Of a stretch of 64,000 nt of DNA, positions 1-37,530 are shown in pieces; the first letter of the stretch is position 1, and every line of letters starts with the position of its first letter. This stretch comes from Macrostomum lignano. Its lineage: Eukaryota. The DNA lies in NCBI GenBank assembly GCA_002269645.1, contig NIVC01001624.1:1-64000 (forward strand), written 5' to 3'. Under the pieces are notes generated by a model. It searched no databases and was not told the origin of the DNA. It saw only the letters and a list, made by a program, of their open reading frames with translations. The translations under genes and the position numbers were made by a program.

Positions 1-723
1 TTCATCAATTAAATAAGCTTGACAATCTCTCTTCCTCAGAAGAAGAATATCATCTCTGGGATCGCGGACCAAGCCTCCGTTGCAGATGGCCAATGCTTCT
101 TTAAAGAGCCGAAGCTTTACAAGAGCTTCCGACAGAATTCGATAGAATTTACCGGCTTTGGTCCAGCTGGATTGCATCTTCCGCATCTTCACGGGCCAGG
201 TTAAATTTGGATAGTCTGAGCTCGCACAGAGCTCGGTTTGAGTACAAAATGGCCAAATTTGCATTGATTCTGATGGCTTTTGTGTAGCAGTCCATGGCAT
301 CCGCCCATCGCTTATTTCCATAATGCTTGTTCCCTCGACCTTCAGCTTCTCCCAGTCTTCGCCAGAAACGCCAGCAAACTTCAATATTTCTCTTCTGCAG
401 TCGCTCAGCCCCATCAACTCCGCCAGCTTTAGAAAGCACTCGATATCATGCTCGAACCGGTTTGCATCGAAATCGTGGTGAGAATACTGGTTCCTAACGG
501 CCCTGGCTCTCTCCAAGGATCCACGCAGTTGTCTCTGAACAGCCGGGTCAGGAAAGAGTTTCTGCAGCTCATCTACAATCATTTTTAGCGAGTTGTTGAA
601 ATCCAGAGTGGTATTCAGTCCCAAGGCCGTCTTGAGTATCTGATTCATGCCGTGGGTGAGCAGCGAGACTGCAAACTGGATTTTCGATGTGGCTTCGGCA
701 CTCTCCATTGGAGCTGCAGCCAT
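1..723 (-). CDS. HEPN (Swt1/DZIP3-like, RNxxxH) + TPR protein, 3'-truncated by the window edge; two compensating frame disruptions (possible pseudogene or consensus error)
   Basis: Manual translation from ATG 723: MAAAPMESAEATSKIQFAVSLLTHGMNQILKTALGLNTTLDFNNSLKMIVDELQKLFPDPAVQRQLRGSLERARAVRNQYSHHDFD...EDWEKLKVEG. The RxxxxH motif is at 478-495. A TPR (GNKHYGNKRWADAMDCYTKAI...LYSNRALCELRLSKFNLAREDAEDAIQLD) follows after a 1-nt loss at about 330, then returns at about 152 to KFYRILSEALVKLRLFKEALAICNGGL. The first frame is open to position 1, so it is absent from the ORF track. Confidence 0.75.
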   Translation of the reverse strand, partial: MAAAPMESAEATSKIQFAVSLLTHGMNQILKTALGLNTTLDFNNSLKMIVDELQKLFPDPAVQRQLRGSLERARAVRNQYSHHDFDANRFEHDIECFLKLAELMGLSDCRREILKFAGVSGEDWEKLKVEGTSIMEISDGRMPWTATQKPSESMQIWPFCTQTELCASSDYPNLTWPVKMRKMQSSWTKAGKFYRILSEALVKLRLFKEALAICNGGLVRDPRDDILLLRKRDCQAYLIDE

Positions 724-1046
724 TGTATTGCAGGCGGATTCTGGAATTTGAAACGGAAGGTTGAATTTTTGGAAGAAAAGGCACGTCGAAACATAGTCCT
801 AAGGGAACCGAGTAGATGGTCAAGCAAGCAATGATACTATTGCCCACAAGCTTTTTTCTTCTGTTTCTGCTTGAGTAAATGGGTTTGGAGTGCCAGCGTG
901 GGGTCTCGCAGAGGGGAGACGGTCACTTAAGCAACTGGCAACTGTCCCTGGACTGAACAGCCGTATGCAGCCTTCAGATGTAAGACGCAATAGCTGCGGC
1001 TGAGCTGTCGGTTGCACATCTGGCCCATTGAGGCTAGTGAAATCAA

Positions 1047-1056
1047 TTACTATTAC

Positions 1057-1105
<49 letters not shown>

Positions 1106-1190
1106 TATTATTATTATATACTATTACTATTATTAATATTAATAATATTATTATTATTGTTAATATTCTTTTTATTATTATTAATATTGG
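1047..1190. repeat. (TAT)n microsatellite, attached to a SINE/LINE-like 3' tail
   Basis: Direct reading of tattattat... The preceding 987-1049 matches the SINE tail at 54900-54960. Confidence 0.95.
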
Positions 1191-1639
1191 CGTTACACGC
1201 CTCGAGTATTATCAAAAGCGCTGACTGGGTAACATCCGGAGCCGGGTCTTGACCAGATCCGTCAGACAGACGGATATCAATGGTAATTAAAGCTGTCAAA
1301 ATTAGATTGGGGTGCACTTAAATCGAAATGGAGGGCCGCCAGGAATCTAATGACCTAAATATAGGAATGCTTGCATTAGGCAGGAAATAAGTCAGGACAC
1401 AATCGGAGTTCGAGGCCATCAGCTTGTCTGTAAGTCGGTCTGTATTGTATACGAATAGAGATCAGTATACAGAAGCAAATTTGGGGCAATTTGGGCAGCA
1501 AAGCCATTCAGTCAGTAGCACAAGTAAAAACGGAAGCTTTGATATCGTTAAAAATCGATGTACAATAAAAAATCTGAAAGTGTATAGCTCGTTCAACGTT
1601 AATCATCATTAAGTAGACAAATGTTTGTATCAACATTAA

Positions 1640-2090
1640 GAAAAAGTAAAAAAATTGAAGATCAAATCACCATTAAAATCAGCGTCGACATCCAAAAACG
1701 GAAGTTTCTTCCCTCCAATCTCAACGGTACTAGTAAATTGGATATTTTTATGTGAGTAGAGCTTAAAGAATTTAGAAATTAAAGAAGTGTTGGCAATGAC
1801 TATCAAGAACAGCAAAGGTTTCGTCAGCATTGCACTTGCAACAACAAGGAGCGCAGTCAAGAGCCATTCATTCTTTATTATCTGTATGCGATGTAGGCGA
1901 TGTAGGTGTCTTCAAACACAAAAATGCCTGAGGTAGAAAAGCTAAGGAGTTTCTTGCATGCCGCTTTAAGAAGCGCTTCAGATGCACTATATTTCACCAT
2001 TTTTGTCGGGGCAAGATGCACGAAAATCCCGTGTGAGACATAGTCTAGCCAAGCGAGGGGGTAATTAAGGCTTAGCATTACCGGCCTGAT
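1640..2090 (-). mobile_element. Degenerate Penelope-like retroelement RT fragment
   Basis: HKNIQFTSTVEIGGKKLPFLDV resembles the Penelope RT motif HxxIxFTxExExxxxLPFLDV. Upstream frames are degraded. Confidence 0.55.
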
Positions 2091-2629
2091 CTTGTAGAAT
2101 TTATTGTATTGCTACTGTTATACGTGATTGCGTTAACTGACCCTTACGAGTACATATAAACGTAGTGAACGTTCACAAGATGGTTCCAAAATCATGTCAC
2201 GCTCAGTCTACGCGTAACCCAAGATGGTGATATCCGTGCAAAGCAACGGAGCACTTGCAGTGGCTTGGTTGTGCACAAAGGAAATATACTTAGACTCGAT
2301 CCAAAAGGGTGGGTGAGCATCAAGCCACACTCGTGTGTATAGTAAACTGCTTCCCACGCAATTTTCAGTGACATCATTCAGTGACATTTAGTACCCAAAA
2401 ATTTCTGCGCATTAAAAGCAAAGTAAAAAATATCTTCAAAATGTTGGAAATTTAGAGACAATACAAAAATCACCAATAATTGAATAATCAGCTACAGCTC
2501 ATATTACTGTTATACTGTGGTAATACTTTTTATCAAGACGAACTTTACATACATAGTTGAGAAAAATATTGTTTAAAAAATCCGTGAGCCCTCGAAGAAG
2601 CAAATTGAGTAGCAATCAAGCCTCATTTA

Positions 2630-4125
2630 TTAATCGTTTAAACTTTTGAGGCTTTCAAACTTTTCCTCATCAGCAGCCTCGCCTCTCGCCAAGCCTGCCT
2701 TCTGGTCCCGCACCAGCTGCTCCATCAGTCTTAAGCCTTCTTGCGCATGCTTCTGTAGCTCCAGTTTCAGGCAAATGTGATATACAGTCTCCAACTCCAT
2801 AAACTCTGCGTCCTCAAAATCCTCACGCAGCTCCTTCAGCCACCTCTCCACAAAGAGTGCACCCAGGAGAGGCTGGGTCTCAAACACTAGGCTCCACCAC
2901 AGGCAGCGGAAATTGATGTAAAGGTGAGAGGACTGGCCGGATGATTTCACCGCGATGAGGTGTCTTGTTGAATGCGGCAGGAAGTCAAACTTCAACGCCG
3001 GGTTATTGGGCTCCCAGGCAAAGCAGAATCTCCATGCAAAGTTATGTTTCGGAAATTCCCGAAAAAATTCATCCCAAGAGATGGAGTCCGTGGCATCCCA
3101 GCCACTCTGCACGGGGTGGTGAGTAAAAGTACTCACCAGTTTCTTAGCCTCCGCTTCATTTCCGACCTTCAGTTCAGCCATCACCATCAGGCACAGTTTG
3201 GCTGTATCGCAGCAGTTGTGTGGCAGGAGGCAGACCCGTTTAGCAAATGCGTTCTTGTCAAAACCATCCGCTTGCAGCTCAACAATAGCAGCAAAAACTA
3301 AGTTGTAGATTTGCGCTCCGTAGTGCACGTAAACTATGGTATCCACTTTCTGCTTCTCCACTTCAGCCAAGGAGAGACACGGCGTCAGCGGCAAAAGGGT
3401 GAATGGGTGGCAGTAGAATTTGCGGGACTGCAAAGGGCGCACGTGCGCGCTGATGGATTGATAGAGTTGATTCGCATCCTTCCTCAACTCGAACAGCTTC
3501 TCCGCTATCCTGCGTTTGGTCCCGAGATAATTTCCACCGATTCCAGCGTTCTTCACAAAAAGAGGGGCTTTCGGCATGAAGAAGTGAGGCATACAAATGT
3601 CAGGGTCCGGGCTGTCTGTCATGAACTGCAGCATCAGATTCAAGGACTCCTTTAACAGTGAGATCAGATTCTCAGGCTGCCAGACATGCTCGGTGAGTCT
3701 GTGCCTCTCCATGATGAAAAAAAGCAAAGTCTTTGCATTGTACGTCTTGAGGCCCTGCGTTCGCCATAGACGTGGCAGCAGCCTCTTGCAGACAAACTTG
3801 AGGAGAATGAAGAGCTGTCCTTGGATGGTATTCAGTTGCCGAATAATCTTCTTTTCGTGAAAACTGAAGCTGACTCTTAGATCGCTGTTTGAGTTGGGCC
3901 TGGTAGCCCTTACCAGGTGGACCTTCTCGTGGTCGCTGAGCAGTACTGAGCAGCGGTCTGCGCAGAACTCGCTGCAGCACTGAAAGGCATAGCAAGTGTC
4001 CATGGCAGGCCGCATGCCGCACGCATCGGCCGCAATGGCAGGCGAGCTGCCTGAAATGAGCGGTTGGACGAGTGGTTGGACGATGCATAAAGCTAGGACC
4101 TGCGCTGGAAGACGTATTCCCCTTG
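2630..4125 (-). CDS. Last exon of ANK-cGLR gene: Mab-21/cGAS-like C-terminal domain plus helical tail
   Basis: The ORF contains MDTCYAFQC (third acidic residue motif), LRVSFSFHEKKII, LLKFVCK, LKTYNAKTLLF, WQPENL and CMPHFFMPKAPLF, all Mab-21 hallmarks. Acceptor tttttag|CA at 4125 (alternative ttccag at 4104) is phase 1 and matches the upstream donor. Confidence 0.85.
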
Positions 4126-4834
4126 CTAAAAAATTTCCAACTGGGCATGCATGAGTCGTACTAAAACGTGATGAATTGGGCTTAAAAATAAACCTCGTAC
4201 ATTATTCTGAACCAGATTAAAAACAGGTCCTCCCTGCACTCTCCTTGCCACCTGTCGGTGTTGCCTGAAGCAGGAGTTTTCCCAACCTTGACGCTCGTGG
4301 CTTGAATGTGCTGAGTAGTATGTTTTTACTTCCATTTTCATAGCGGCCACCACCTCAACTGTTTTGTTTTTGGTCCCTGTTTGATCAGTGCGCCTGCCTA
4401 TGCTCACGGGTCTTTTCTACAAACTTCCTATCCTATATCTGGAAGTGCGGTAGAGATGAATTTACTCGCATACTTACTGCTTTGCAAGAGACAATGATAG
4501 CTAGGTACAATATAGAGCAGTCTTGATTGTTATGAGACAGTTTAAATTAGGACTGTACTATTCAGTCGATTGGAATTAGTTAATATACGAGGGTAGATAT
4601 CAGAACACGCACCAAAGTCAAACCTGTTTATTGAGATAAAATCATGTAAAAACACTTTATACCAGGGTAGAGGAAGAACCCTTCAATAAATAATACGGAT
4701 GTGCCATTATAGTCTAATGAGAAAAGAGATCTCAGGACTTTCGTCTTCTGTCGCAAAGTTGAAACAGTAAGATCACATGGATTTACCATCCAGCCCATCA
4801 CATATTAGGCAAATACAGTTCCTCAGAATCTCAC

Positions 4835-5231
4835 CAGCAGCAACCTCCAAGACCACGTGCCCCTCGTCGACCGAAAGCCGGTCTATACTTGCTCCGCTGC
4901 AAGCGCAACCTCCCTGCAGGTGCAGTGTCACGCCTGGAACGATGACAGTCCAGTCTATGTCGGAGTCAGCAGCGGTTCTGCCGTTTAGCTTTACCAAGTT
5001 GTTGCCCATCCGTCAGCGAAGCTGCCAGTCATCACAATTTCACTCTTTGTGAGCAGCTTCGCCAACGATTGAAGGAAATCAGCCATTCGCGTTTGAAATA
5101 CAACTCGTTGCTGGGTAAATCCTGCAGAGTTGAGCAGCTTATGCAGCGCAATGCTCAGTGTTTGATCTTCGTTCGGGTCATCTCTGAAAGTTTTTAGCGA
5201 TAATTTTTGCAGACTTAGCACGCTGCTCATG
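4835..5231 (-). CDS. Middle exon of ANK-cGLR gene: nucleotidyltransferase catalytic motif; 1-nt frameshift at about 5005
   Basis: EIVMTGSFADGW(G)NNLVKLNGRTAADSDIDWTV gives GS...DxD. The two halves are in different frames because TGG GGC reads TGGGC. Acceptor tctttag|C at 5231; donor GCT G|GTGAGA at 4835. Confidence 0.8.
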
Positions 5232-5809
5232 CTAAAGATTTAAGCACTGAATTAATTATGCTTAAAATTTACCCCGAATTTATATTTTTGCAGTGCACCT
5301 AAGCAGAGGGTAGTTGTCTTCTATTTTGGGTAGCGGTTCGATTAGCTTAGAGCCTTAGTTTAAGCGAATTAGATGCGTTCATTATTCTGCTACATTCATT
5401 GGCTTGTCAATGCCAATGTACGTTGGGCGGAGTAATATGGGCTTGAAACTATGGGGGTGGCTTGGCTGCATTTTTAACAGCTCTTCAGTAACTGCAATAG
5501 ATTTTACGCAGCCAATGCAATATTCATTTGCTGCAATATGCGAAATTAATGTAATACAATGAACGAAATTCTGTTAGCACTGTCTCAGCTTACCTTATTT
5601 GCTGCAAGTCGAATTTTATTTCAGGAATTGTTTCCGTTGGACACCTGAAAAGTACGTTAAAGTGCAAAAATTAAAATATTAAACAATTAGTCAGGCAGAA
5701 GCTGTGCCACATAAACGAATACTGAGAGGATTTCTTAACAAACCAATCGTAGTGAAGACCACAGAAACTGAAACACCCGAGGGCAGACATGCTTTCGCTT
5801 TAGACTCAC

Positions 5810-8389
5810 CCGTTTAGTTTCCATAGCAAAAAGGCATGAAAATCCGCGTGGCCGCCTTCAGAAGCCAGTTGAACGTCCCTGGGCTTCAATTCCGCCCCTG
5901 CGTCCATCAGGTACTTTGCTACTCGGACATGTCCGGCACGACAGGCCATTGAAAGAGCTGTGAATCCTTCGTTGTCTTGCGCGTTCACAGCGGCTGGATC
6001 AGCCAGTATGGCAAGGACGGCATGAACAATCTGGTCATGGCCGTGGCGGGCAGCAAGCATCAGAGCGGTGATTCCTTGAGCATCGCTGGAGTCAATGCGA
6101 GCCATGTATGGCAGCAGGGAAACGGCAAGGGACACGTGACCAGCTTCAATGCTTTTTAGCAGAGCAGCGTGGCGACCCTTCTCAGGATGCAGTTTGGCCA
6201 AAAGAGCCAGGTTCTCCGCTAGGCGCTTCACTGCATCTCCATTTAGCAGTCGCAGAAGTGCGGGGTCTGACATGCTCACTGGCGGCTTGCAACCCTGCAG
6301 CGTCGGGTCCTGGACATCGCTCAGCCCTCTCAGTATAACAGTCAGCGCTTCAGATCGAGCGTTTTCAATTGAGGTGCGAACGCCAATTTGCACGTACTGG
6401 TGTCGCAATTCAGGCGGAACAGTTTGCAGCAAGTCACTAAAAAAGTGCATTCGCCCATCCAGAATGGCATTAGCAACGGCTTCCTTGAGGCACTCAAGTT
6501 TTGCCCTTGAGTCATCCAGTGCAGCTAAGAGTGTAACAATGGTCGGCACATGGCTGGACAAGGCAGCCCGCGATACTGCAGCGCTGCAGCACTCAGCTCT
6601 GACAACGGGATCCGTGATCTCCTGTAGCAACTTTGTCACCAGCTCTGATCGACCATCAGCAGAGGCACAGATAGTGGCATCCTTGTAGGATTGTATTTTG
6701 GAATCAGGATTGGCGATGGCTGCAAGCAGCTGAGACAAAGACGATTCATGGCCTTTCCTTGCGGCGACACCTACAGCTTTAATGCAACAGCGATCTTTCA
6801 CTTGCTGATCAGTAATTGTGTGAAGCAACAGCGCCAAAGCTTCCTTTTGATCAGACATCGCAGCTCCCGTGATCCCCTTTCGGTAGCATTTATTCTTCAT
6901 CTCTGGATCGCTGACGGAATTGAGAAGCTCAGACAGAATCTCCACGTGACCTTCATTGGCAGCGACTAAAGTGGCTTCCTTGCAGCATCGATCTCTGAGA
7001 TTGGGATGGCTCGCTGTTTGCAGTAGGCGGGTTAGCAGTTCCCTCCAACCGTTTCTTGTGGCCGTCAACACGATATAATTATAGAGCCTTTCCTTACGTT
7101 TCGAGTCGGAAACAAGTTCAAGCGCGTCCGCAATTGTGTCCCTCCAGCTTTGCTTGCATCCATCCGCAATCACGATTTCGCAGCACTGGTCTTTGCACTC
7201 TGCATCCCTTACCGTTTTTGCCAGCTCATATGCCGTAGCAGGGTGTCCGCTGGACACAGATAGCCGAACCAAAGAGACGCATAGCACATGGACACAGATA
7301 GCCGAACCAAAGAGACGCATAGCACATGGACACAGATAGCCGAACCAAAGAGACGCATAGCACATGGACACAGATAGCCGAACCAAAGAGACGCATAGCA
7401 CATGGACACAGATAGCCGAACCAAAGAGACGCATAGCACATGGACACAGATAGCCGAACCAAAGAGACGCATAGCACATGGACACAGATAGCCGAACCAA
7501 AGAGACGCATAGCACATGGACACAGATAGCCGAACCAAAGAGACGCATAGCACATAGACACAGATAGCCGAACCAAAGAGACGCATAGCTTGTCTCTGGT
7601 TGTCGAGTCAGACACAGGAAGAAATCCAGCTAGCATCTCATGGCGTCCTGTTTTCGCTGCTTCCCAAAGGGCAGTTTTTTGCAATGAATCCTTGATGGCA
7701 CCATCTGAAACAGCTGCAATTAGTTCATCCGCAATTACCTTATGCCCGTTCTTTACTGCCTGACCGACTATTTCTTTAAAGCGCTGGTCTTGGACCGCGT
7801 TATGCCCAAAGCTTTGAAGAAGTTCAGAAACAATTTCGTTGTGGCCAAAAGTTGCAGCAGTTCGGATTCCTTCCCAGAATACCTCATTCCGCCTAGTCGC
7901 ATCCGCAGCAGCCTGAATCAATTCGGAGACGAGCTTCTTATGGCCCCGTGATGCGGCTCCATATGTGGCCAATCGGAGGCACTCGTTCTCAACTGGCGAG
8001 CCGCGAACAGCTTTGAGGATCTCCATAACAGCGGATTCTCTTCCGTTTCTCGCGAAGCACTCAACAGCGGATTGCCGGCACTGGTCCAAGACATCAGCAT
8101 CAGTTACTGCAGGTAGGCTTTCCTTTACAATCTCTTCGCGGTCATACACATTGGCAGTCTGAATCGCAGTTCTGCAGTAGCGATCTCTGAACTCGGAATC
8201 AGGTGCATATTTTAAAAGCTCGGAGACCATCTCCGCGTGCCCGGCTTTTGTGGAGATCTTGATAACTTTCTCCAGAGTCTGCTCCTGACCTGCCGAATTA
8301 GCGAGAACGGCCAAAAACTTTTTGACAGAATCAAAATTGCCATTCCGGGCTGCAGCTTCCAGTTGATCGGCCGGTTTCTCAGAACTCAT
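5810..8389 (-). CDS. Ankyrin-repeat exon (many degenerate ~34-aa repeats plus canonical ANKs) of ANK-cGLR gene, interrupted by a 38-bp VNTR
   Basis: ORFs 7226-8389 and 5806-7548 join into one frame if 8 extra 38-bp units are removed (DKLCVSLVRLSVSSGHPATAYEL). Canonical ANKs are GITALMLAARHGHDQIV and GFTALSMACRAGHVRVAKYLMDAGA. Ends AAC GG|GTGAGT, a phase-2 donor at 5810. Confidence 0.85.
7252..7589. repeat. 38-bp tandem repeat, 9 copies, inside the ankyrin coding exon
   Basis: Unit ggacacagatagccgaaccaaagagacgcatagcacat starts at 7252, 7290, 7328 and so on to 7556. Confidence 0.95.
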
Positions 8390-10574
8390 TGCTGCATAAC
8401 TCGCTGCTTTGATCTTTACAGCGCTGCTAATGCAAAAATTGAAAATGTATGTTTTGTCATTGTTATAGCCAAATTTTAAATGTTACAGGATTAAAAGTGA
8501 TTTTAAATTTTTTATAACTCTACAAAATAGTAAATTTTCAAAACCGTGCTCTTCTCCTTTGCCACGCTTGGTTGGTCCAATCTAAATAAAATCTCATGGT
8601 AAATCATGTTAGATATTTGAATCCTAAATTCTCTGATTACAAGAAATAGCAACTACTAATGAATATATGGTTTTAATTGAGAGATAGAAATAATTACATG
8701 CATCTAGGCCATGAAAGTTGACCAAATACAGTTTATCATTAAGAAAAAATTGTGGCACCAACCATTGCTAATAATAAATTGTAAAATAAAAAAATAGTTT
8801 CTAGAACTATGGCTCAGTGAGCAACAAGCAATAGAGACATATATATGGCTATTTAAATTATCTAACATGCAAAGCTACTTGTAAATTTTATTTCTGTTAT
8901 TTTTTATTTAAAACTGTGCTGACTTATAACTGCCCATGCCTTTTATGTGCTATTGTTTCCAAAGTTTCCCAAATAATATTTTTTATGATTTAATAAACTA
9001 TTAAACTATTAACTACTGATATTTTGACGTTACTATTTTATCAATTCAGTCCAGTTTCCAATGTTTTAACTGAGATAACATTATTTTTTGTGACAAAAAG
9101 TTTATTTACTTAAATCATTTAAAATAATTAAAATAATTAAAATTGAAATTGAAAATTCAAAAAATTTACACGGTTGCTACCAGTGTCCTACCACTCATAT
9201 TGTCTGAAAACATCCTTTCGTTGACAACAAACTTAATTAGTTTAAAAGCATAGTAAATTCATTTTTTCCTGTAAGTATAGTTGAAGGCCAGGAAAGGAAT
9301 TTTATTTCGTCTCAGTTTGTTATAATGAAATGCACCACCCCGCGACGTCCATGAGATCGCAACAATTAGAATTTTCTCATGAAGTTTTATAACTTAGCTT
9401 TGGTATTGTGATCGGATTCAATCTGAATTTGAATTCGATTAGTCCACTTCCTTTGCTTACTTACGTGGGTCCTTACGCTACCTGCATACACTTTATAATA
9501 GAGTCCTGGTGATGGATTACAGTAGTAGTACTTTAGTGTGACAGTGTGATTCGTAGAAGCGTGTATCGTATTTCTTTAGTTTCATATGCATACTGTACTA
9601 CTACTGAGTCTACTGTATTCTTTCATTTATTTTAACAATATTCGTACGTATTATTATCGCACTATAGTCTATAATTTTTACTGTTAATTGCTTTGTTTTT
9701 GTAGTCTCGTATGTATTTATTCTATTATTTGTATTTCATTCATATCGTTATTATTTCTCGTAAAAGTAGTTCTACCTATGTACATGTACTGACGTATGTT
9801 ATTCTTGCATGATATATTTTATCGATTAATTTGTACAGGTACATTAATTTGCGCGCCGCGTGGGGGTTGTTTGTCTGGGTTTTGGATTAAGGGTGTTGTT
9901 GTTATCTGTTTACCTTTAAATATATGCTTACACTACAGTCAGCAGCCGCTCTCGCCCTTCCCCTTGCTTCGCTTCTCGACCTAGGCTCGCTAACCCTTAG
10001 CTGTGACGCTGTCTGGCCTCCTTGCACCAACTCTTCCGCCGTCTACCTTGGCCCACCATTAATTAGCTAATCAACTGATCCAGCAATTTTAAGCAAAAGT
10101 CTAAGGGTTGAAGCGGCTTGCCGATCTGCTAACTAATCGTGAACTATCTAAATTAACCGCTACACAAATCCGTTTTATTCGCCTTATTCGTCACATTAGT
10201 ATGCATCATCACGAATGGGTGAATCGTCTCAAGTTAGGCTAAATTATAGCTACAATATCAGCCCGATCATCCATTTAAACCCTATGAAAGCACTCAGAAA
10301 TAACATGTTACGTCAGAATTCACATTTCAATGAGAGCATAAAGTCAATGACGTGAAAATTTGCTTTATTAAATAAGGTACATGTACATTTACGCGTGAAT
10401 TCAAAATAGTTAATGGTTAGTTAGTGAATAAAAAACAATTTTTTAAAGTCTGCATAAATAGATTGCGTTAGAATGCAGCGAATTGCAGAAATCCGTGATA
10501 TACAGGTACAGTAGAAGGCATGAGGGGGCTTTTGTTAGGCTAAAGGGGGCTTTTGGGACAAAATTTTTCACGTC

Positions 10575-11050
10575 CTCCATAATCCCATTAAATCCATCCA
10601 TATTATCCCCGACAGAATCAGAAAAAAAGGGGGTCGCACTTGCTCCAAAAACTTTGAACGTAATCCCAGTAAATCCATCCATATTATCCCTGACAGAATC
10701 AGAAAAAAGGGGTCGCACTTGCTCACAAAACATCCTCCATAATCCCATTAAATCCATCCATATTATCCCCGACAGAATCAGAAAAAAAGGGGGGTCGCAC
10801 TTGCTCACAAAACATCCTCCATAATCCCATTAAATCCATCCATATTATCCCCGACAGAATCAGAAAAAAAGGGGGGTCGCACTCGCTCACAAAACGTCCT
10901 CCATAATCCCATTAAATCCATCCATATTATCCCCGACAGAATCAGAAAAAAAGGGGGGTCGCACTCGCTCACAAAACGTCCTCCATAATCCCAGTAAATC
11001 CATCCATATTATCCCTGACAGAATCAGAGCATTACCCCTGACAGAATCAG
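10575..11050. repeat. ~80-bp minisatellite, about 6 copies
   Basis: Recurring cataatcccattaaatccatccatattatccccgacagaatcagaaaaaaaggggtcgcac with variable A/G runs. Confidence 0.9.
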
Positions 11051-11503
11051 AGCATAACAGGTGTCCACTAACACCTGTTATGCTCACTGACACAGACATA
11101 ATCCACCAACATCCACCCATAGCATCTTCGAAACAATCAGAAAATAATCTGCATTCTTCTCCCCACATTCAATCCGAAGCGTTGAAACCAGATCCCTAAA
11201 ACTTTAAATCCCCTAACCCAGGGTCCTTACCCTTTGAAAAAAAATTAAATTTTCTCTAAAAATGTTTCCAGTTGTCTCTCCAGGTTCCTGGAGGCTGAGC
11301 ACCAGGTAGGTATCCATCCAGCTAGGTACTAATGCGGTAGTTTGCAAATAACAATAAAAAGATAACCATTCTAAAAAGCAATCAACTGGCTCAAAGCAGG
11401 GGGTCAGTGAGACAGACTGGAACACAAAAGAATTTGCCATATACTGCTACATGCAGTTCTCAACTGTCAGTTCAGTCAGTTGCCATGGCAACCGTATGGC
11501 ACA

Positions 11504-12304
11504 TTACTTGGCCCCATTCTGCAGCTCGGCAGGCTTGTCGATCTCCATGGGGACATCCTTGAGCTGCGGCTTCTCCTTGGCGGGCGGAGCCTCGAACGGC
11601 GCCTCGATGCAGAGCCGGCCGTCCTGGCTGAGCTTGCTGGCCACCTGGTCCAGCTTGGTGCCGGCGGGCAGCTGGAACTCTCTCTCCAGCCGCTTGTGGA
11701 TCCGCTGCCCGTTCGACTCGTCCTTGTGCTCAGCCTCGACTCGCACGCAGTCGCCCTGCTGCTTGATGCGGATCTCGTCCGGCTTGAACTCGCGCACCGA
11801 CAGCTCCGCCTTGAACCGCTTGCTGCCGTCGCTGGCCTCCACCAGCTGGCCGGACTGCAGGTCGCCTCGCAGCAGACTGCGCAGCTCGTCCCACACCGAG
11901 TCCTGCTGCTGCTGTTGCTGCTTGAGCTGCTGCTCCTTGAACGGCGCCTTCAGCACCAGCATGCCGTCCTGGGTGAAGCCGCTGCTCAGCTTCTCAGCGT
12001 CCACCTCCTCCGGCAGCTCCACCGTCCGCTTCACCTCCGTCGAGTCCTCGCCGTTCTCGAGCCGAGCCACCACGCGCACCTTCCGGTCCTCTCGCTTCAC
12101 CGACACGTCCTTCGGGGGGAAGCCGCGAAGGTCGACAGTCCGGCTCCACTGCCGAGGTCGCCTCGGACCCCGGTGGCGTAGCAGCTGCACCAGCGGGTCG
12201 TACTCGGGCGTCAGCCAGTCGTCCAGCTCGCTCATGGCTGCCGCGAGCGGCAGGGCGTGCGAGAACGGCGTGTACACGTTGCTTGGCGCGATCCAGAGCG
12301 ACAT
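11504..12304 (-). CDS. Small heat-shock protein with two alpha-crystallin domains (flatworm p40/HSP20-like), intronless
   Basis: ACD1 is VDLRGFPPKDVSVK...VKRTVELPEEVDAEKLSSGFTQDGMLVLKAP. ACD2 is LSVREFKPDEIRIK...KRLEREFQLPAGTKLDQVASKLSQDGRLCIEAP. There is a C-terminal V-P-M (IxI-like) motif and high GC3. Confidence 0.93.
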   Translation of the reverse strand: MSLWIAPSNVYTPFSHALPLAAAMSELDDWLTPEYDPLVQLLRHRGPRRPRQWSRTVDLRGFPPKDVSVKREDRKVRVVARLENGEDSTEVKRTVELPEEVDAEKLSSGFTQDGMLVLKAPFKEQQLKQQQQQQDSVWDELRSLLRGDLQSGQLVEASDGSKRFKAELSVREFKPDEIRIKQQGDCVRVEAEHKDESNGQRIHKRLEREFQLPAGTKLDQVASKLSQDGRLCIEAPFEAPPAKEKPQLKDVPMEIDKPAELQNGAK

Positions 12305-12425
12305 TGTGGCGAATTCGCTTGATTGTTGAACGCTTCGAGTGCTTTGCTTGGTTTGCTTGGATTGCTTTCGATTGGCTTGTTTGCTTGCTTTGCAACTTGA
12401 CTCTTCGAGAATCAGCCTGTCGCGC

Positions 12426-12495
12426 TTATATAAACTGCGCGGAGAAGTTTCTAGAAGTATTGTGTCACTGACTTGATTCTGGAAATTTCTGGAAA
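12426..12495 (-). promoter_or_regulatory. Heat-shock promoter of the sHSP: TATA box plus two HSE arrays
   Basis: TATATAAG on the minus strand at 12426-12433. GAAnnTTCnnGAA at 12444-12456 and TTCnnGAAnnTTCnnGAA at 12477-12494. Confidence 0.9.
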
Positions 12496-13902
12496 TGGGG
12501 CTTGTTTTCTATAAAATAAGATAAAATAATTATATTTCTACTTACAGTAGACGTTGTGAACATGTGTATTTTTCTTTTTGAATACGTACGAAAGTGGAAC
12601 ACCTTTCAAGACGCAACTTGTTTGTATCCGCGAGTGCAGCGAGGCACGCAAAGTAGATGAGAGGGAAAATGGGAGGGAAAATTGCATAATTACACAGGTA
12701 CAGGTACGAGCGCCTTAACTCTCTAAGATTGGGCAGAAATTGAAGATTCCTACAGTACGGCAGCCGTTCTGTGTATGTCCAGAAAGGGTGCCGCGGGATG
12801 GGATCGTCAGTCCCTGTGCGGTGGGGGATTAGAATTGCTAAAGTAAGATTTAGAGCTTCCAAGCCATACAATCTTAAGACCCGATTAAGGATGGAGAGGC
12901 GTGAACTACAAGCGCATTACAGAACAAGTTTTACTCGCAACACTCCCGCGGTTTACAACTCTGCATTGAGATTGTGAGAGCGTCCCGCAGTTGCTGTGCT
13001 CAGTTACAGCTGGCTTGCAACAGCTACGATCGATATCGCCGCCCTCAACATGCTTTATCTCAGCACGATCTGCTGTGAGTATACTCGAGTAACCTTCATG
13101 CTTAGCGATTCATTCCAGATAGGAAACTCGAAATGGCTGAGAGGTTTCGCTTGTTGCGAATGTCAAGTGGCAGTCTTAATCTGTCAGACTGCAGTTTCCG
13201 CCCCGATTTTGGTAAGTTCGAGTCTCACGGGTTGCCAAGAGAAGTTTAATTACAAGGGGGATCGAATCGGCTGTTGCGAACGCCCCGACATGCCGAACTG
13301 TCAGACCATGCCGCTAATTATTCCTCGTGACAGGTAAAAAACTCCCGCTAATAAGCTGGTGCCGGAGGCTTTTCCTTTCTAGTCGGACTCGCAGTTGCAC
13401 GAGTACTGATCAGCATCAGCTCCAGCTTCATCCAGGATGATGCGTATGTAGGTATTCGCACCCCCCAATCCAGCACTGCAAGCGAACTGCTGGAACTCGG
13501 CCAGCTTGCATTGATCGGCCGGCGGCAGTTCCCCTCCATCTGGGGCCTCAGGATACTTGGCTTGTTCCCACGCGGAAACCATGTGCATCCTGCTCCGGGA
13601 AATTGATGTCTCATTGCTGGCACTCGCCGCAGCCCTGGGAGTAATAAACAGGCCTCATAACTGGGAGCTGCCCGAGCTGGCTGGACAGGGAGTGCACATT
13701 TTTATTGCCCTCGTGCCGTTGGCAGAGCACTCGCGCTTGCAGGAACGAAAGGCAATCATCTGGGAAGTTGTGGCATTGCTGAGAGGCGCTGGATAGGCTA
13801 TCGAATCGTGTTTTTCACTTGGAGTATGAGTAAGTCTGCTGCATAAGGCTTCTCACAAAACTACTGGAATGCTCTTGGAATGTGAGGAATTACGGAGATG
13901 CT

Positions 13903-14530
13903 CACAGGACCATTGAGAAGCTCCGAGAATGTCAGCAAAGTCAGAGACGCTCACAGGACCATTGAGAAGCTCCGAGAATGTCAGCAATGTCAGAGACGCT
14001 CACAGGACCATTGAGAAGCTCTGAGAATGTCAGGGATGTCAGAGATCACAGGACCATTGAGAAGCTCTGAGAATGTCAGGGATGTCAGAGATCACAGGAC
14101 CATTGACAAGCTCCGAGAATGTCAGGGATGTCAGAGATCACGTACAGGACCATTGAGAAGCTCTGAGAATGTCAGGGATGTCAGAGATCACAGGACCATT
14201 GAGAAGCTCTGAGAATGTCAGCAATGTCAGAGACGCTCACAGGACCATTGAGAAGCTCCGAGAATGTCAGCAATGTCAGAGACGCTCACAGGACCATTGA
14301 GAAGCTCTGAGAATGTCAGGGATGTCAGAGATCACAGGACCATTGAGAAGCTCTGAGAATGTCAGCAATGTCAGAGACGCTCACAAGACCATTGAGAAGC
14401 TCCGAGAATGTCAGGGATGTCAGAGACGCTCACAGGACCATTGAGAAGCTCCGAGAATGTCAGCAATGTCAGAGACGCTCACAGGATCATTGAGAAGCTC
14501 TGAGAATGTCAGCAATGTCAGAGACGCTCA
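13903..14530. repeat. 46-49-bp minisatellite
   Basis: Unit cacaggaccattgagaagctc(c/t)gagaatgtcag(caa/gga)tgtcagaga(cgct/t). Confidence 0.95.
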
Positions 14531-14997
14531 CAACACTGCATTTTTCTGCCAATAAAAAAATTGAAAACAAACTGTAAGGCTCGGGGAGCTGACAGTCAGT
14601 TTATCCAAATTCGAACAGGGCAAGACAGGCCAGAGCTGCTGCACAGGGCAGATTCTGACCAAATAAAACATTGGACTTGCAGCCTCCTGAAGCTAATAGA
14701 AGTCGCATATTAAAAATAACAGAAAAAACTTTAACTAAATAGAAACTAAATGTAGAACTAATTTTTTTTCTAAATAAGACGGCGTTCCGACGTTAAAAAA
14801 TGGTCACATCTAATTTATCTTGATAATGTGAGTAAGTTTAAAAGATTCTGCTACACCCTCAATGACGGTTTCAACTTCATCCAGAGCACTGGCTCAGTGC
14901 AAATTCTCCGTTTAAGTCTGTGGAAGGCGGGCTCGGTCTTCTTGAGCACCCCAGCGTCTGCGGACTTTTCTCCTCGAAATTCGAAGAGGCCGGCCGC

Positions 14998-17900
14998 TCA
15001 GTCGCTCCTGACCGCCGCCGAGTCCTCCTCGCCCACCTCCTCGATGCTGGCGATCTGCCTGACGTCCGCCTCCGCCCGGCTCCTCCACCGCTCCTTGTTG
15101 CTCGCTAGCAGCTCCAGTGGCCGCCAGGTCGCCTCATCTGGCGGCGTTGACTGCGGGGGCGGGGGCGGCGAAGTCGGCGGCTCCGGCGGCGGCTTCGCTT
15201 CGTCGGCGTTCTCGGGCTCCGCGGCCTCCTCGCTCTGCTGCTCGTCGATGTCGTCGCTGGCCTTCTTGCTGAGCTCCTGGACGCCGTTCAGCAGCTGCAG
15301 CAGGGTGCGGAAGCACGGCTCCACGATGTACTCGATGAAGCCTTCGGGAGGGATCGGACAGGTGAAAGTCATGGACAGCTGAACGCGCAAGGATGCCACG
15401 CTTCCAAACCGTACGAAATGGACTGGAGAACCTTTAAGCCTATAGCCGAAGCTAAAATCGGGTTTTTAGAGTTAAGCAGAGGTGGTCGCGGTTAGTACGC
15501 AGTTAAATGGGATCATTATTACATGTTCGACCCTCGAGGTGGCCGCAGTGAGCCCGCATTGCTGATCGGCAGGAGTTCCTGTGTTTCCAGTGTGCATTTG
15601 TCCTGAATTCACATCCTTCTACATAGTACCGAGGGCAAGAATATCGGTTTCAACAGCTACTCTCGCTTCCCTGGGCATCTCTTGAGGGCTTCCCTACCCC
15701 CTATCAATGATTCAGGAATTTGAGAAAGCCAGAAGCCGGAGCTGGAGATGCTCAGATACTTCCCCATAGCCCAGCCTCCTTGCGGGGTTGGGATGGATTT
15801 TTTTTTGAAAGAATGAATTGAAGAGCGGGGCTGCAGGGACTCCAGCCACAAGATCCTTGTCTGCCTGTCCGCTGCTTCCCATCCGCTGCTTCAAGGCGCT
15901 CTGCCCGGTGCTCACACGGCAGGAAAAGTGCAGGAATCCCCGCAGCTGCGCAGCCTGCGGAAGACAGCTGGGCCAATCTTCCCGTTCCCCAGCCAAGCTT
16001 TTATCTCGCCTCTCGATTCCCCTCCCCCACTCTGTCCCCCCGCCTCGCCCGCGAAGGCAGATCTCAGCCAGTTATTCAGTTGCCACAATTCGATAGCAGG
16101 TGTCCCCTCGCCTCGGTTTCCCGTCACCGCGTCGAGCTGAAATCGAATTATTCAGTTCTCTGTTCGACACGATTTGCGCTTCGCGAACTCTGATTTACTG
16201 ATCAGCTGAGCCTCTGCGTCCCCTGAGCGTCCTCTACTCAGCGAGCCAGGTGAGCAGTAAGGTCACTGAGTGATTGGGGGAGTGAGCAGGGAGGTGACTG
16301 AGTGATTGGGGGAGTGAGCAGGGAGGTCACTGAGTGATTGGGGGAGTGAGCAGGGAGGTGACTGAGTGATTGGGGGAGTGAGCAGGGAGGTGACTGAGTG
16401 ATTGGGGGGAGTGAGCAGGGTGACTGATCCAGTCTCTTTTTCTCTCTTATCTGCAAGCTTCAATCCAAAATTCCCAAGCCCCAGGCGCCATTCATTATCA
16501 TACAAAAATTTCATTCAAAGCGACGGCTCGCAGCCAGGAAATCCCTATTATGAAATCCCTCTGGGGACTGCGAGACTTGCGCGGACAATCTTAGGGGAGA
16601 ATTATCCTCATAACTGAAGGCAGCAGACCGGCTACCTCGATAAATTACTGTTGCTGGCTTCGAGAAAATTTCTCAGTTACGAGCTACGTCCCGAGTTCTC
16701 TAAGAATACCAGCTGCCTTCCGAAATGTCAATAATGTCATTGCCGTTACTGAGCAACCAGTCTCCACGGATGCTCTGATCCCCACGGATGCTCTGATCCC
16801 CACGGATGCTCTGATCCCCACGGATGCTCTGATCCCCACGGATGCTCTGATCCCCACGGATGCTCTGATCCCCACGGATGCTCTGATCCCCACGGATGCT
16901 CTGATCCCCACGGATGCTCTGATCCCCACGGATGCTCTGATCCCCACGGATGCTCTGATCCCCACGGATGCTCTGATCCCCACGGATGCTCTGATCCCCA
17001 CGGATGCTCTGATCCCCACGGATGCTCTGATCCCCACGGATGCTCTGATCCCCACGGATGCTCTGATCCCCACGGATGCTCTGATCCCCACGGATCCCCA
17101 CGGATGCTCTGATCCCCACGGATGCTCTGATCCCCACGGATGCTCTGATCCCCACGGATGCTCTGATCCCCACGGATGCTCTGATCCCCACGGATGCTCT
17201 GATCCCCACGGATGCTCTGATCCCCACGGATGCTCTGATCCCCACGGATGCTCTGATCCCCACGGATGCTCTGATCCTTTCCAGTCTCACCGACTTGCGA
17301 GGCAGCTATCATCGTCTTCTCCCGGTCGCACAGCGGGCTGCACTGCATCCCCAGCTGCTTCTCCTTGTCGCCCTGGGCAAAGAACTCCTCGCTGAGCAGG
17401 TGCGTCCAGCGCTCGTGCAGCGACCAGCCCTTGGCGGGGTGGCTGATGTCGGCCGAGTGCAGGATGTAGGACAGAATTTCCACCCGGGGCAGGTTCTCCG
17501 GACACAGGCTGCCCTCCTTCATGGCGGACACCTGGGCAAAGTGGGTGGACATGTCCGTGGCCAGCACCATGTCGATGACCATCGAGCGGAACTGACGGAA
17601 CTCCACGTGGCCCATGTTCTGCAGGATGTTGCACCTGCGGGGTAATTGGTTGTGGACTCGTTGCCAAGCGAAGCTGGTGCCGCAACAAAATCTGCTGCTA
17701 TGTTTCTTTAGTTTTTCTGGCAACGAGCTGCTGACGCTACAGGCGCCCTACTGGCGCGAGGACAGGGGCGCTCTCAGCGTCTGCCCACATTCTGTCGGCG
17801 GCATGACCGATGTTCACGCCTTTGAACTGGTGTGTTGCAGCGTGCAACACCGGCTTGACGGACCTCCAGCTCATCCAGCTCCTCCAGCCCCTTCAGCCCC

Positions 17901-19536
17901 TTCAGCCCCTTCAGCTCCTTCAGCTCCTTCAGCCCCTTAAACTCCTTCAACTCCTTCAGCCCCTTCAGCCCCTTCAGCTCCTTTAGCTCCTTCAGCCTCT
18001 TCAGCCCCTTCAGCCCCTTCAGCCCCTTCAGCTCCTTCAGCTCCTTCAGCCCCTTCAGCCCCTTCAGCCCCTTCAGCCCATTCAGCCCCTTCAGCCCCTT
18101 AAACTCCTTCAACTCCTTCAGCCCCTTCAGCCCCTTCAGCCCCTTAAACTCCTTCAACTCCTTCAGCCCCTTCAGCCCCTTCAGCCCCTTCAGCCCCTTC
18201 AGCCCCTTCAGCCCCTTCAGCCCATTCAGCCCCTTAAACTCCTTCAACTCCTTCAGCCCCTTCAGCCCCTTCAGCCCCTTCAGCCCCTTCAGCCCCTTCA
18301 GCCCCTTCAGCCCATTCAGCCCCTTAAACTCCTTAAACTCCTTCAGCCCCTTCAGCCCCTTCAGCCCCTTCAGCCCCTTCAGCCCCTTCAGCCCTTTCAA
18401 CACCTTTAGTACCTTCCCAGAAAGAAAAGTCAGCGTTAATTCCATTTGGAAGCACTACTTTTGATCACAACTCACCTTGAGTCTGCATCCAGCAGCCTCT
18501 TGAACACGGCGCTGACGTGGTGATTCTCCAGCACGGCCTTGTCGTTGTACACCACGGCCAACTGGGAGGCCGTCTGCACGTGGAAGCCGTTGGTGGTCCC
18601 GGTGTGCTCGAAGTCGTGCACCAGCGCGGCGAACAGCAGGCTGAAGACCTCCAAGTCGCTCAGCCAGCCCGTCAGGCCGTGCTGCCGGACGATGTAGCAG
18701 CAGGTCTGCGCCACGTCCGCTGAGTGCGCGCAGTTGTGGTAGGGGTTGCCGTGCAGGCGGTAGCCCTCCTCCATCATGTCCAGGAAGGCCTCTAGCGCGG
18801 GCACCGATATGGAGAACTTCTCGATGAGGTCCAGACGCTGGAACAGGTGCAGCCCCATCGCCCTGACTGGCCGGCCGGAGCTCAGCTCGGACAGGCGGAA
18901 CACGTCGAAGTCCCACGAGGCGGCGCCCTGGTCGAGACAGGCGCGGACCTCCGCCGGCAGCGACACGCCGGGCGCAGCCAGGCTCCGGCGGCGGCGGAAC
19001 AGGCGGTCGATGTACACCCCGGTCTGGATCACCGTGGCCAGGCTGCGGAGGCGGCGTCGGCGGAACACGGCCTCGCTGGCTCTCCGGGTGAAAGTGAAGT
19101 TCAGCCACTCCTGCACCTTCTCCGGAACTTCCAGAGTGCCATCGGCGGAGCCCCCCGGCTTCCGGAACAGGTCCTCGTCGTCCTCCCGCCCGCGCGTGCG
19201 CTGCTGCACCGCGGACTCGAGAAGGCGGCCGGCCTCCGACAACGAGGCGACGATGTCGTCGCGGGTGAGCCTGTCTGCTGCCACCAGCTGCTTCAGCCGC
19301 GCCAGCTGCTGTGCGCAGGCCTGCAGCTCCGAGACGCAGCCCACGTCGCCACCGCCGACTCCACCGCCGACTCCACCGCCGACTCCACCGCCGACTCCAC
19401 CGCCGACTCCACCGCCGATTCCACAGCCGACTCCACCGCCGACTCCACCGCCGACTCCACCGCCGCCTCCGGCGCAGCTGCCTTGGGCACCGTCTGTCTG
19501 AGCTGGCGAATCCTGCCGCTCTGTCTGGTGTTCCAT
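14998..19536 (-). CDS. PDE1: Ca2+/calmodulin-dependent cyclic nucleotide phosphodiesterase 1; exons 18476-19536, 17291-17634, 14998-15341 (582 aa)
   Basis: PDE1 N-terminal motifs (VPEKVQEWLNFTFTRR, LRSLATVIQTGVYIDRLFRR) and catalytic motifs (YHNCAHSADV, VHDFEHTGTTN, LENHH, LATDM, LHSADISHP, EFFAQGDKE, SQVGFIEYIV). GT-AG junctions are phase-consistent. An alternative upstream start or exon is possible. Confidence 0.92.
16262..16425. repeat. 32-bp minisatellite, about 5 copies (PDE1 intron 2)
   Basis: Unit gagtgattgggggagtgagcagggaggt(g/c)act. Confidence 0.9.
16762..17278. repeat. 18-bp minisatellite next to the PDE1 exon 2 donor
   Basis: Unit ccccacggatgctctgat. Confidence 0.95.
17880..18400. 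repeat. 9-bp minisatellite (PDE1 intron 1)
   Basis: Unit cttcagccc / cttcagctc / cttaaactc. Confidence 0.95.
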
Positions 19537-37132: not shown

Positions 37133-37530
37133 GGTGTGTGGGGTGCAGGATGGGGTAGTTGGTGTCTGGAGTGTGGGGTGCAAGATGGGGTAGTTGGCAT
37201 GTGGGGTGCAAGATGGGGTAGTTAGTGTGTGGGGTGCAGGATGGGGTAGTTGGCATGTGGGGTGCAAGATGGGGTAGTTAGTGTGTGGGGTGCAGGATGG
37301 GGTAGTTGGCATGTGGGGTGCAAGATGGGGTAGTTGGCATGTGGGGTGCAGGATAAGGTAGTTGGCATGTGGGGTGCAGGATAAGGTAGTTGGCATGTGG
37401 GGTGCAGGATAAGGTAGTTGGCATGTGGGGTGCAGGATAAGGTAGTTGGCATGTGGGATGCAGGATGGGGTAATTGGCATGTGGGGTGCAGGATAGGATA
37501 GTTGTGTATGAGGTTATAGGATGGGTAGTT
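37133..37530. repeat. 28-bp minisatellite upstream of KDM4
   Basis: Unit gtggggtgca(a/g)gatggggtagttggcat. Confidence 0.93.

Follow-up and report, generated by a model that had tools for sequence, protein, structure and literature searches.

A 38-nt minisatellite and the reading frame of an ankyrin–cGAS-fold gene copy in Macrostomum lignano

Does a tandem repeat that lies inside a coding exon, and whose length sets the reading frame, act as a reversible switch for its gene, or has it simply broken the copy that carries it? This question is raised by a 64,000-nt stretch of the flatworm Macrostomum lignano (the window; GenBank assembly GCA_002269645.1, contig NIVC01001624.1, positions 1 to 64,000), in which a 38-nt minisatellite of nine units interrupts exon 1 of Mlig014260. 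This four-exon, minus-strand gene is predicted to encode ankyrin (ANK) repeats fused to a nucleotidyltransferase (NTase) with the fold of cGAS, as in Mab21 proteins and cGAS-like receptors (cGLRs). A preliminary description, made from the window sequence, had proposed that gain and loss of units could toggle this gene between ON and OFF states in the manner of bacterial contingency loci. Our comparison with other copies of the gene did not bear this proposal out. We consider it likely that a young minisatellite has frameshifted one ANK and cGAS-fold gene copy, that the same copy bears a second, private frameshift in its catalytic exon, and that the window therefore holds a recent null allele or a decaying duplicate. 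We favour a reading of the array as mutational damage, caused by minisatellite instability throughout the genome, over one as a regulatory device.

The exons of the gene and the features that disrupt it are as follows.

5810–8389, minus strand: exon 1, ANK repeats, from the ATG at 8389 to the donor GG/GTGAGT; supported by Pfam, by the repeat register and by collinearity with the 1355-aa protein P0297.
5594–5644, minus strand: exon 2, a 17-codon linker (CPTETIPEIKFDLQQI); supported by splice contexts, by the match to proteins P0297 and P0148 and by the same small exon in the paralogue locus L001.
4835–5183, minus strand: exon 3, NTase core with the GSFADGW and SDIDW motifs; supported by tblastn and by a single uninterrupted exon in L001.
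2630–4050, minus strand: exon 4, Mab-21 C-terminal helical domain and tail, with the stop at 2630–2632; supported by Pfam Mab-21_C and by comparison of P0297 with protein P0295.
7251–7589, minus strand: 38-nt minisatellite within exon 1; supported by Tandem Repeats Finder, register reading, a pattern search and the empty site in two other contigs (L002 and L003).
7226–7228, minus strand: premature stop at codon 388; supported by the open reading frame (ORF) 7226–8389 and by allele simulation with nine units.
5005–5007, minus strand: probable private 1-nt deletion, a second frameshift, in exon 3; supported by pairwise and three-way alignments and by protein models.

The array and the frame of the ankyrin exon

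Exon 1 encodes ~22 ANK or ANK-like repeats of 33 residues. Pfam models Ank_2, Ank and Ank_4 match both of its halves (E values for Ank_2 of 1e-19 and 5e-23), and the array interrupts this exon. Tandem Repeats Finder gives the array a period of 38, 8.9 copies, 99% matches and a score of 671. Read in minus-strand register, it consists of eight full 38-nt units (GCTATGCGTCTCTTTGGTTCGGCTATCTGTGTCCATGT) and a terminal 35-nt unit, arranged head to tail as in minisatellites with units of ~10–100 bp. The sole variant within the array is a C>T carried by the 5′-most unit. The 35-nt core has nine matches in the window, all within the array, where 0 are expected from 100 shuffles; with no copy elsewhere in the window, an origin of the unit as a transposon fragment or dispersed repeat was dropped.

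The preliminary description had held the unit to be amplified native coding sequence in the ANK register. For 35 of its nucleotides this proved correct. The single-unit reading is DKLCVSLVRLSVSSGH, which is identical in the intact M. lignano protein P0297, and the ANK exon with one unit reads ...TRDKLCVSLVRLSVSSGHPATAYELAKTV..., keeping the 33-residue register with GH anchors at residues 115, 148, 181, 214, 247 and 279. The remaining three nucleotides, TGT, are not native: they are missing from the empty site of the contigs L002 and L003. Each 38-nt unit therefore joins 35 native exon nucleotides to 3 of filler, and the TGT at the array junctions, whose inter-unit sequence is CCATGTGCTATG, has no counterpart in the flanks of the empty site in other copies.

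As 38 is not divisible by 3, the number of units sets the frame of the ORF that contains them. Relative to a single unit, the array adds 339 − 35 = 304 nt, or 1 mod 3, and the resulting frameshift reaches a stop at codon 388, upstream of the NTase, as had been proposed. Exon 1 continues for 1416 nt beyond this stop and three exon junctions follow, so that the mRNA would be expected to undergo nonsense-mediated decay. The shifted frame hits this stop right after the array, which disposes of the idea that the +304 and −1 frameshifts of the gene compensate one another. When alleles with 1–11 units were simulated, the ANK exon was open at 1, 4, 7 or 10 units only. The earlier statement that these copy numbers yield full-length protein thus stands for the ANK exon; for the whole protein it fails, given the second frameshift at 5005–5007. 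Minus-strand ORFs in all three frames (n = 3) cross the array without stops, again as previously stated. This openness is unremarkable, since 13 of the 21 arrays in the window are likewise free of stops in three frames on at least one strand.

Reading through the array also comes at a price in protein sequence. Alleles with 4, 7 or 10 units would carry 38, 76 or 114 added residues inside an ANK repeat, and each 38-residue block has a mean Kyte-Doolittle hydropathy of +1.41, compared with −0.09 for the native ANK region; one 19-residue window of the block reaches 1.91. With 5 Cys per block, the inserts are as Cys-rich as the preliminary description had anticipated. From nine units, a single step leads either to eight, which is out of frame, or to ten, which is in frame with 114 non-native hydrophobic residues, and the native protein is recovered only by collapse of the array to one unit. 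At the level of translation, the in-frame states therefore do not resemble ON states that would give a working protein at the cost of a few tolerated residues.

Intact copies and a probable second lesion in the catalytic exon

An exhaustive profile search recovered P0148 (UniRef100_A0A1I8JJ31), a 1355-aa M. lignano protein whose 90% cluster also contains P0297, P0296, P0294 (PAA65738.1, Mlig014260g1) and P0295 (PAA54041.1, Mlig014260g3). In assembly Mlig_3_7, the locus of P0294 lies on contig NIVC01001623.1 (L002) and that of P0295 on contig NIVC01002980.1 (L003). Both contigs are syntenic with window positions 1–12500 and 98.5–99.5% identical to them. At the site of the array they read ...GACAAGCTATGCGTCTCTGTGGTTCGGCTATCTGTGTCCAGCGGACAC..., with exactly one unit where the window has nine, and therefore the single-unit state is ancestral and coding. 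One unit is likewise found in P0297, P0148 and P0294, and the 1355-codon frame with one unit is open in P0297 and P0148, both 1355-aa UniProt models. The comparison with copies lacking the array, which the preliminary description had called for, thus returned a single unit and an intact gene, and copy number differs between copies as is typical of a variable number tandem repeat (VNTR). By these comparisons the nine-unit state is private to the window copy, and the array appears to have been born within exon 1. The single copy in P0297 carries the T variant (CVSLVRL), and therefore the expansion occurred on a T-variant haplotype.

To compare the remainder of the gene, and for comparison only, we built a conceptual window protein with one unit and one G restored. 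It differs from P0297 at N31D and L622Q only, plus an optional 10-residue segment. The variants at 8299 (N31) and 6221 (L622) are private to the window. Between L002 and L003 the substitution difference is 0.14%, and the window differs from L003 by ~0.45%, as estimated from mismatch counts.

P0296 (1100 aa) comes from the older ML2 annotation and points to a further allele class. Its N-terminus reads MRLFGSAICVHV followed by LCVSLVRLSVSSGH, in which the CVHV residues are the coding product of an inter-unit junction and could not arise from a single-unit gene. In simulated alleles, translation from the first ATG gives this N-terminus with two or three units and with no other copy number; the match holds provided that the gene predictor took the first ATG. 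On that assumption, we infer that the sequenced copies carry 1, 2–3 and 9 units. The CVHV junction means that amplification is seen independently of the window's assembly. The preliminary description had allowed that copy number might prove invariant, or the array an artefact of assembly; neither concern was borne out by these copies.

The NTase core of the window copy carries the second lesion. Positions 5005–5007 read GGG in the window and GGGG in L002 and L003, and all five related protein models (P0148 and P0294–P0297) read GWGNN at this point. With paralogues as queries, the tblastn match changes frame, −1 to −3, at approximately window position 5000, although the homologue residues there are contiguous. 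As a result of the 1-nt deletion, the GS and DID motifs lie in different frames. Elsewhere in the coding sequence, wherever an indel difference occurs, the window version always keeps the frame of the full-length proteins. Window-private indels are also depleted in coding sequence: one of 13 is coding, compared with ~44% of the compared sequence (binomial estimate, P about 0.006). Such depletion is the pattern of real variants under selection and not of random errors, and we conclude that the deletion at 5005–5007 is probably real. With this putative deletion the gene is not otherwise intact, and no number of units would turn the window haplotype ON. We also considered a 17-nt mini-intron at the lesion and rejected it: with it removed the frame is restored, yet the junction then contains a TGA.

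Private indels are common in the sister contigs. In L002, 28 indel columns are private and 11 of these fall in exons, and the Mlig_3_7 contigs carry private 1-nt coding indels that are most likely long-read assembly errors. These coding indels account for the truncation of a 1355-aa protein in the GenBank models PAA65738.1 (822 aa) and PAA54041.1 (999 aa).

As a neopolyploid, M. lignano carries three subgenomes (S, L1 and L2) with 1.4–2.4% single-nucleotide divergence (PMC10733133), and the Mlig_3_7 assembly contains 180 Mb of duplicated blocks at at least 95% identity (PMC5730564). Intact copies coexist with the window copy whether the latter is a homeologue, an allele or a strain variant, and therefore its loss is probably buffered.

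Minisatellite instability and competing explanations

Tandem repeats make up 20.5% of the window, which contains 24 minisatellite arrays of at least 100 nt; under uniform placement, ~1.5 of these are predicted to fall in 4.4 kb of coding sequence. For the M. lignano genome, 15% simple and tandem repeats have been reported (PMC5730564). Copy numbers could be compared over the ~17 kb common to the window and L002/L003, and six of the six minisatellites shared there differ, as follows.

38-nt array: 8.9 copies in the window, 1 in L003, 1 in L002.
18-nt array: 29 copies in the window, 12 in L003, 11 in L002.
32-nt array: 5.3 copies in the window, 10.3 in L003, 10.3 in L002.
49-nt array: 13.2 copies in the window, 7 in L003, 7 in L002.
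82-nt array: 5.6 copies in the window, about 1.6 in L003 and L002.
9-nt array: 58 copies in the window, 22.7 in L002; L003 does not cover it.
Positions of the other five shared minisatellites in the window: 10573–11028, 13895–14532, 16250–16420, 16764–17277 and 17876–18399.

The exception is a microsatellite, (ATT)n at 1046–1188, with 47 copies compared with 46 and 46.7. Given that all six shared minisatellites vary, copy-number change is not specific to the 38-nt array, which is thus the outcome of a genome-wide process that landed in an exon with a period not divisible by 3. Like the 38-nt array, the 82-nt array is essentially newborn in the window copy.

A plausible course of events begins with duplication of a 35-nt piece of the exon, with the 3-nt TGT filler left at the junction as would be made by end-joining or template switching. 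The resulting 38-nt unit may then have been amplified to nine by replication slippage or unequal exchange, as at the neighbouring minisatellites. The transcript of the frameshifted copy would be a target of nonsense-mediated decay, and any product would be a truncated ANK fragment without the enzyme, a loss probably buffered in the neopolyploid genome. DNA secondary structure was discarded as a cause of slippage, as the boundary hairpin has a z score of 0.3 and the units are less structured than shuffles.

Several observations weigh against this account of a disabled copy. The allele class of two or three units represented by P0296 has an intact NTase exon, as its GWGNN shows, and the existence of this class suggests that array length has changed more than once. 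The 1-nt deletion sits in a short G run; if it were an assembly error, the array would be the sole lesion. Once the two lesions are set aside, the reading frame is open over all of its 1365 codons, and only two residues differ from an intact protein. A gene so nearly intact must have been inactivated very recently; either lesion, or both, could still be segregating or be reversible.

It is against this background that the proposed switch has to be judged. On such a reading, unit gain and loss would turn the ANK-cGLR copy ON (1, 4, 7 or 10 units) or OFF, whether in germ-line cells or in neoblast lineages, and would persist through the advantage of expressing an immune sensor variably. The variation in copy number among sequenced copies, the 99% homogeneity of an array that is either young or actively turning over, its three open phases, the nearly undamaged remainder of the gene and the cGAS fold are all in keeping with it. 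Set against these, the instability is regional, three-frame openness is common among the arrays of the window, only the one-unit state is native, and the second private frameshift lies downstream. In addition, intact copies elsewhere and three subgenomes mean that an ON/OFF state of the organism would not follow, and no arrays, out of frame or otherwise, were found in the exons of L001, the only paralogue locus examined, whose arrays lie in an intron and the flanks. We therefore regard a contingency-like switch as quite unlikely. Its more specific form, in which a hypermutable, frame-cycling coding VNTR changes length often enough, in germ-line cells or among neoblasts, to give heritable or mosaic ON/OFF states of one ANK-cGLR homeologue and the deletion at 5005–5007 is an assembly error or a late hit, is very improbable; it would amount to a eukaryotic counterpart, at minisatellite scale, of the bacterial loci.

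The effects of the array might instead be avoided in the mRNA, by its removal as a new intron or by use of its terminal AG as a spliced-leader (SL) trans-splice acceptor, so that a protein, functional or shortened at its N-terminus, would still be made. Within the array, the sense strand indeed has an AG only in the terminal CCAG (7250/7251), which follows a pyrimidine-rich tract, and the donors proposed in the preliminary description, at 7553 (304-nt intron) and 7559 (310-nt intron), do restore the frame when joined to it. These donors score −5.7 and −9.4 bits, and the donors within the array range from −4 to −11 bits compared with +4.7 to +7.3 for the three real donors of the gene (GTGAGT, GTAAGC and GTGAGA); the scores are approximate, as they come from a generic 5′ splice-site matrix written from general knowledge. 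With an acceptor, a tract and a suitable frame but no donor consensus, the array does not qualify overall as a spliceosomal intron. SL trans-splicing is widespread in M. lignano (PMC5730564), and the ML2 model P0296 shows that a long ORF can begin within or after the array, so the terminal AG is conceivable as an SL acceptor. A rescued mRNA would still meet the frameshift at 5005–5007, and we give rescue at the RNA level very little credence. An assembly problem, in which the array is real but its nine-unit length, the deletion or both are errors and the true allele is shorter, in frame or intact, is also unlikely. The deletion does fall in a short homopolymer (GGG compared with GGGG), contigs of the same locus in Mlig_3_7 do have many 1-nt coding indels, as L002 illustrates, and the ML2-derived P0296 fits two or three units and not nine. 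Against such errors stand the independent occurrence of the CVHV junction in P0296, which shows that amplification is not private to the window's assembly, the frame kept by the window at every other coding indel difference and the avoidance of coding sequence by its private indels. In general, long reads easily span an array of 339 nt.

Taken together, the general instability, the second lesion, the non-native inserts and the intact copies argue for a disabled gene copy and against an ON/OFF contingency switch.

Family assignment, related systems and neighbouring genes

The identity of the gene as an ANK and cGAS-fold (Mab21) fusion, proposed earlier, was supported by Pfam and by structure prediction for a paralogue. 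Mab-21_C matches exon 4 with 24.0 bits, next to a cut-off of 24.1, and the Mab-21_C domain PF20266 is present in six of six family members; the Pfam NTase model for Mab-21, PF03281, has no match in the Macrostomum family. The fold was examined on paralogue P0016, which is 45% identical to the last exon of the window, with a 48-sequence alignment. Its AlphaFold model has a pLDDT of 88 and a pTM of 0.86, and the best 50 PDB matches found by Foldseek are all cGAS, MAB21L1 or Sp-cGLR1 (coral), with E values of 4e-8 to 3e-5 and target-normalised TM scores of 0.41–0.58. A sequence profile searched against the PDB with the ANK region left out matches only cGAS (E 0.005) and cGLR1 (E 0.056). The GSFADGW and SDIDW motifs, putative counterparts of the catalytic G-S motif and of the [DE]x[DE] dyad that supplies two of the three catalytic acids, are kept across the family and lie in different frames in the window copy. 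Judged by the modelled paralogue, the predicted gene product is an ANK-repeat protein joined to a nucleotidyltransferase that has the cGAS fold and resembles Mab21 and cGLR proteins.

Four exons in the same layout also make up the paralogue locus L001 (protein P0015), where a single unbroken exon holds the NTase core. A word-indexed search with the last exon returned paralogues at 36–59% identity, all from M. lignano except the JGI protein P0014, and one with the single-unit ANK region returned distant ANK proteins only. Neither search retrieved the near-identical M. lignano proteins of the P0148 cluster, and hence the intact one-unit copies, which came to light only with the exhaustive profile search. 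Exact-sequence look-ups gave no record for the small heat-shock protein ORF of the window, the last-exon ORF, the truncated 387-aa ORF, P0148, P0296 or P0297. In another paralogue, P0146 (PAA62074.1, M. lignano), the N-terminus consists of near-identical 33-residue ANK-like units (KRDQCCIEAAE...VVKFLVP...), which suggests that ANK domains of the family also grow by recent in-frame (99-nt) tandem duplication. Exon 4 contains an optional in-frame segment of 30 nt at 3107–3136 (minus strand; GTGAGT...GTGCAG), which the UniProt models P0148 and P0297 splice out and P0295 from GenBank keeps. This segment is either an optional intron of very small size or an artefact of gene prediction.

Bacterial contingency loci undergo phase variation by slipped-strand mispairing of short intra-ORF repeats, as in Neisseria opa and Haemophilus lic1. 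The M. lignano array resembles them in being a tandem repeat, in the ORF of a putative host–microbe interaction gene, whose unit number sets the frame, here with every third copy number in frame. It differs in its unit of 38 nt, compared with 1–7 nt, and in its host, a multicellular neopolyploid animal. Only its one-unit state is native, the other in-frame states adding a long foreign peptide; this gene copy carries a second lesion, and the instability is genome-wide and not locus-specific. Finally, contingency loci switch reversibly within a lineage, whereas the variation seen in the array is between copies, as it is at the neighbouring minisatellites.

Eukaryotic coding minisatellites and VNTRs include the PRDM9 zinc-finger array, which published work refers to as a coding minisatellite, the 60-bp VNTR of MUC1 and yeast FLO1. 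These share with the array an exonic position, copy-number polymorphism between alleles and high unit homogeneity, but their periods are multiples of 3 and their length variants functional, whereas the period of 38 shifts the frame. Further counterparts are found among human disease genes, in the FLT3 internal tandem duplication (FLT3-ITD) and in frameshifts of the MUC1 and CEL VNTRs. There too a short exon stretch is duplicated with a few untemplated or locally templated junction bases and the protein is disrupted or altered; in M. lignano, the duplication was amplified on to nine units, in the germ line and in one of several gene copies. In kind, the array is best placed with coding-exon VNTRs or internal tandem duplications that cause loss of function, a known class.

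Fusions to ANK repeats and to tetratricopeptide repeats (TPR) occur among cGLRs with added domains, for example in the coral Stylophora pistillata, and 87% of cGLRs are without added domains (Li et al., PMC9980059). The Macrostomum family shares with the ANK-cGLR fusions a cGAS-like NTase joined to ankyrin repeats (PMC9980059); it differs in being too divergent for PF03281 and in a predicted ANK region that is much longer (about 760 aa). We found no literature on a Macrostomum cGLR or on Mlig014260, and nothing relevant on Macrostomum minisatellites. The state of the locus is also akin to the loss of duplicates after whole-genome duplication in M. lignano (PMC10733133, PMC5730564), in that one of several 98.5–99.5% identical copies is disabled while others are intact; here the disabling lesion is a newborn minisatellite and not a point mutation or deletion.

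The locus offers a clean, datable case in which a minisatellite born from unique coding sequence disables a gene, with the empty site, a probable intermediate of two or three units and the expanded state all within one species. It indicates that the tandem-repeat load of M. lignano (15–20%) extends into exons. That all six minisatellites differ across the shared 17 kb is relevant to annotating this neopolyploid model and to studying duplicate decay. The searches also document a large ANK and cGAS-fold family in a free-living flatworm, a member of a phylum reported as mostly cGLR-less through loss. The array would be of far greater importance only if it switched at a high rate and the gene had an immune role.

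Other genes and repeats of the window were noted in passing. Upstream of the ANK-cGLR gene, at a distance of 3 kb, an intronless ORF of 266 aa (11504–12304, minus strand) matches the HSP20/alpha-crystallin domain twice and corresponds to a tandem small heat-shock protein. A 3′5′-cyclic nucleotide phosphodiesterase (PDE) gene (Pfam PDEase_I) is represented by the ORF at 18472–19599 (minus strand). Inside its first coding exon, an in-frame 12-nt minisatellite at 19349–19470 encodes (GGGV)n; this exonic array is tolerated, its period being divisible by 3. A PDE catalytic-domain exon at 16746–17723 (minus strand) runs into the 18-nt array of 29 copies (16764–17277) with the ORF open throughout; the exon boundary probably lies at the start of this array. 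Read-through would append a long DQSIRG/PWGSEH repeat tail to the PDE. A KDM4-type histone demethylase exon with JmjN and JmjC domains lies at 36025–37002 (minus strand), flanked by 20-nt and 28-nt arrays (31815–33774, 34326–34725 and 37137–37535). In homology searches this exon was 54–69% identical to counterparts in many animals and carried no signal of species. At the end of the window, 62950–63948 (minus strand) is a reverse-transcriptase (RVT_1) ORF fragment of a retroelement.

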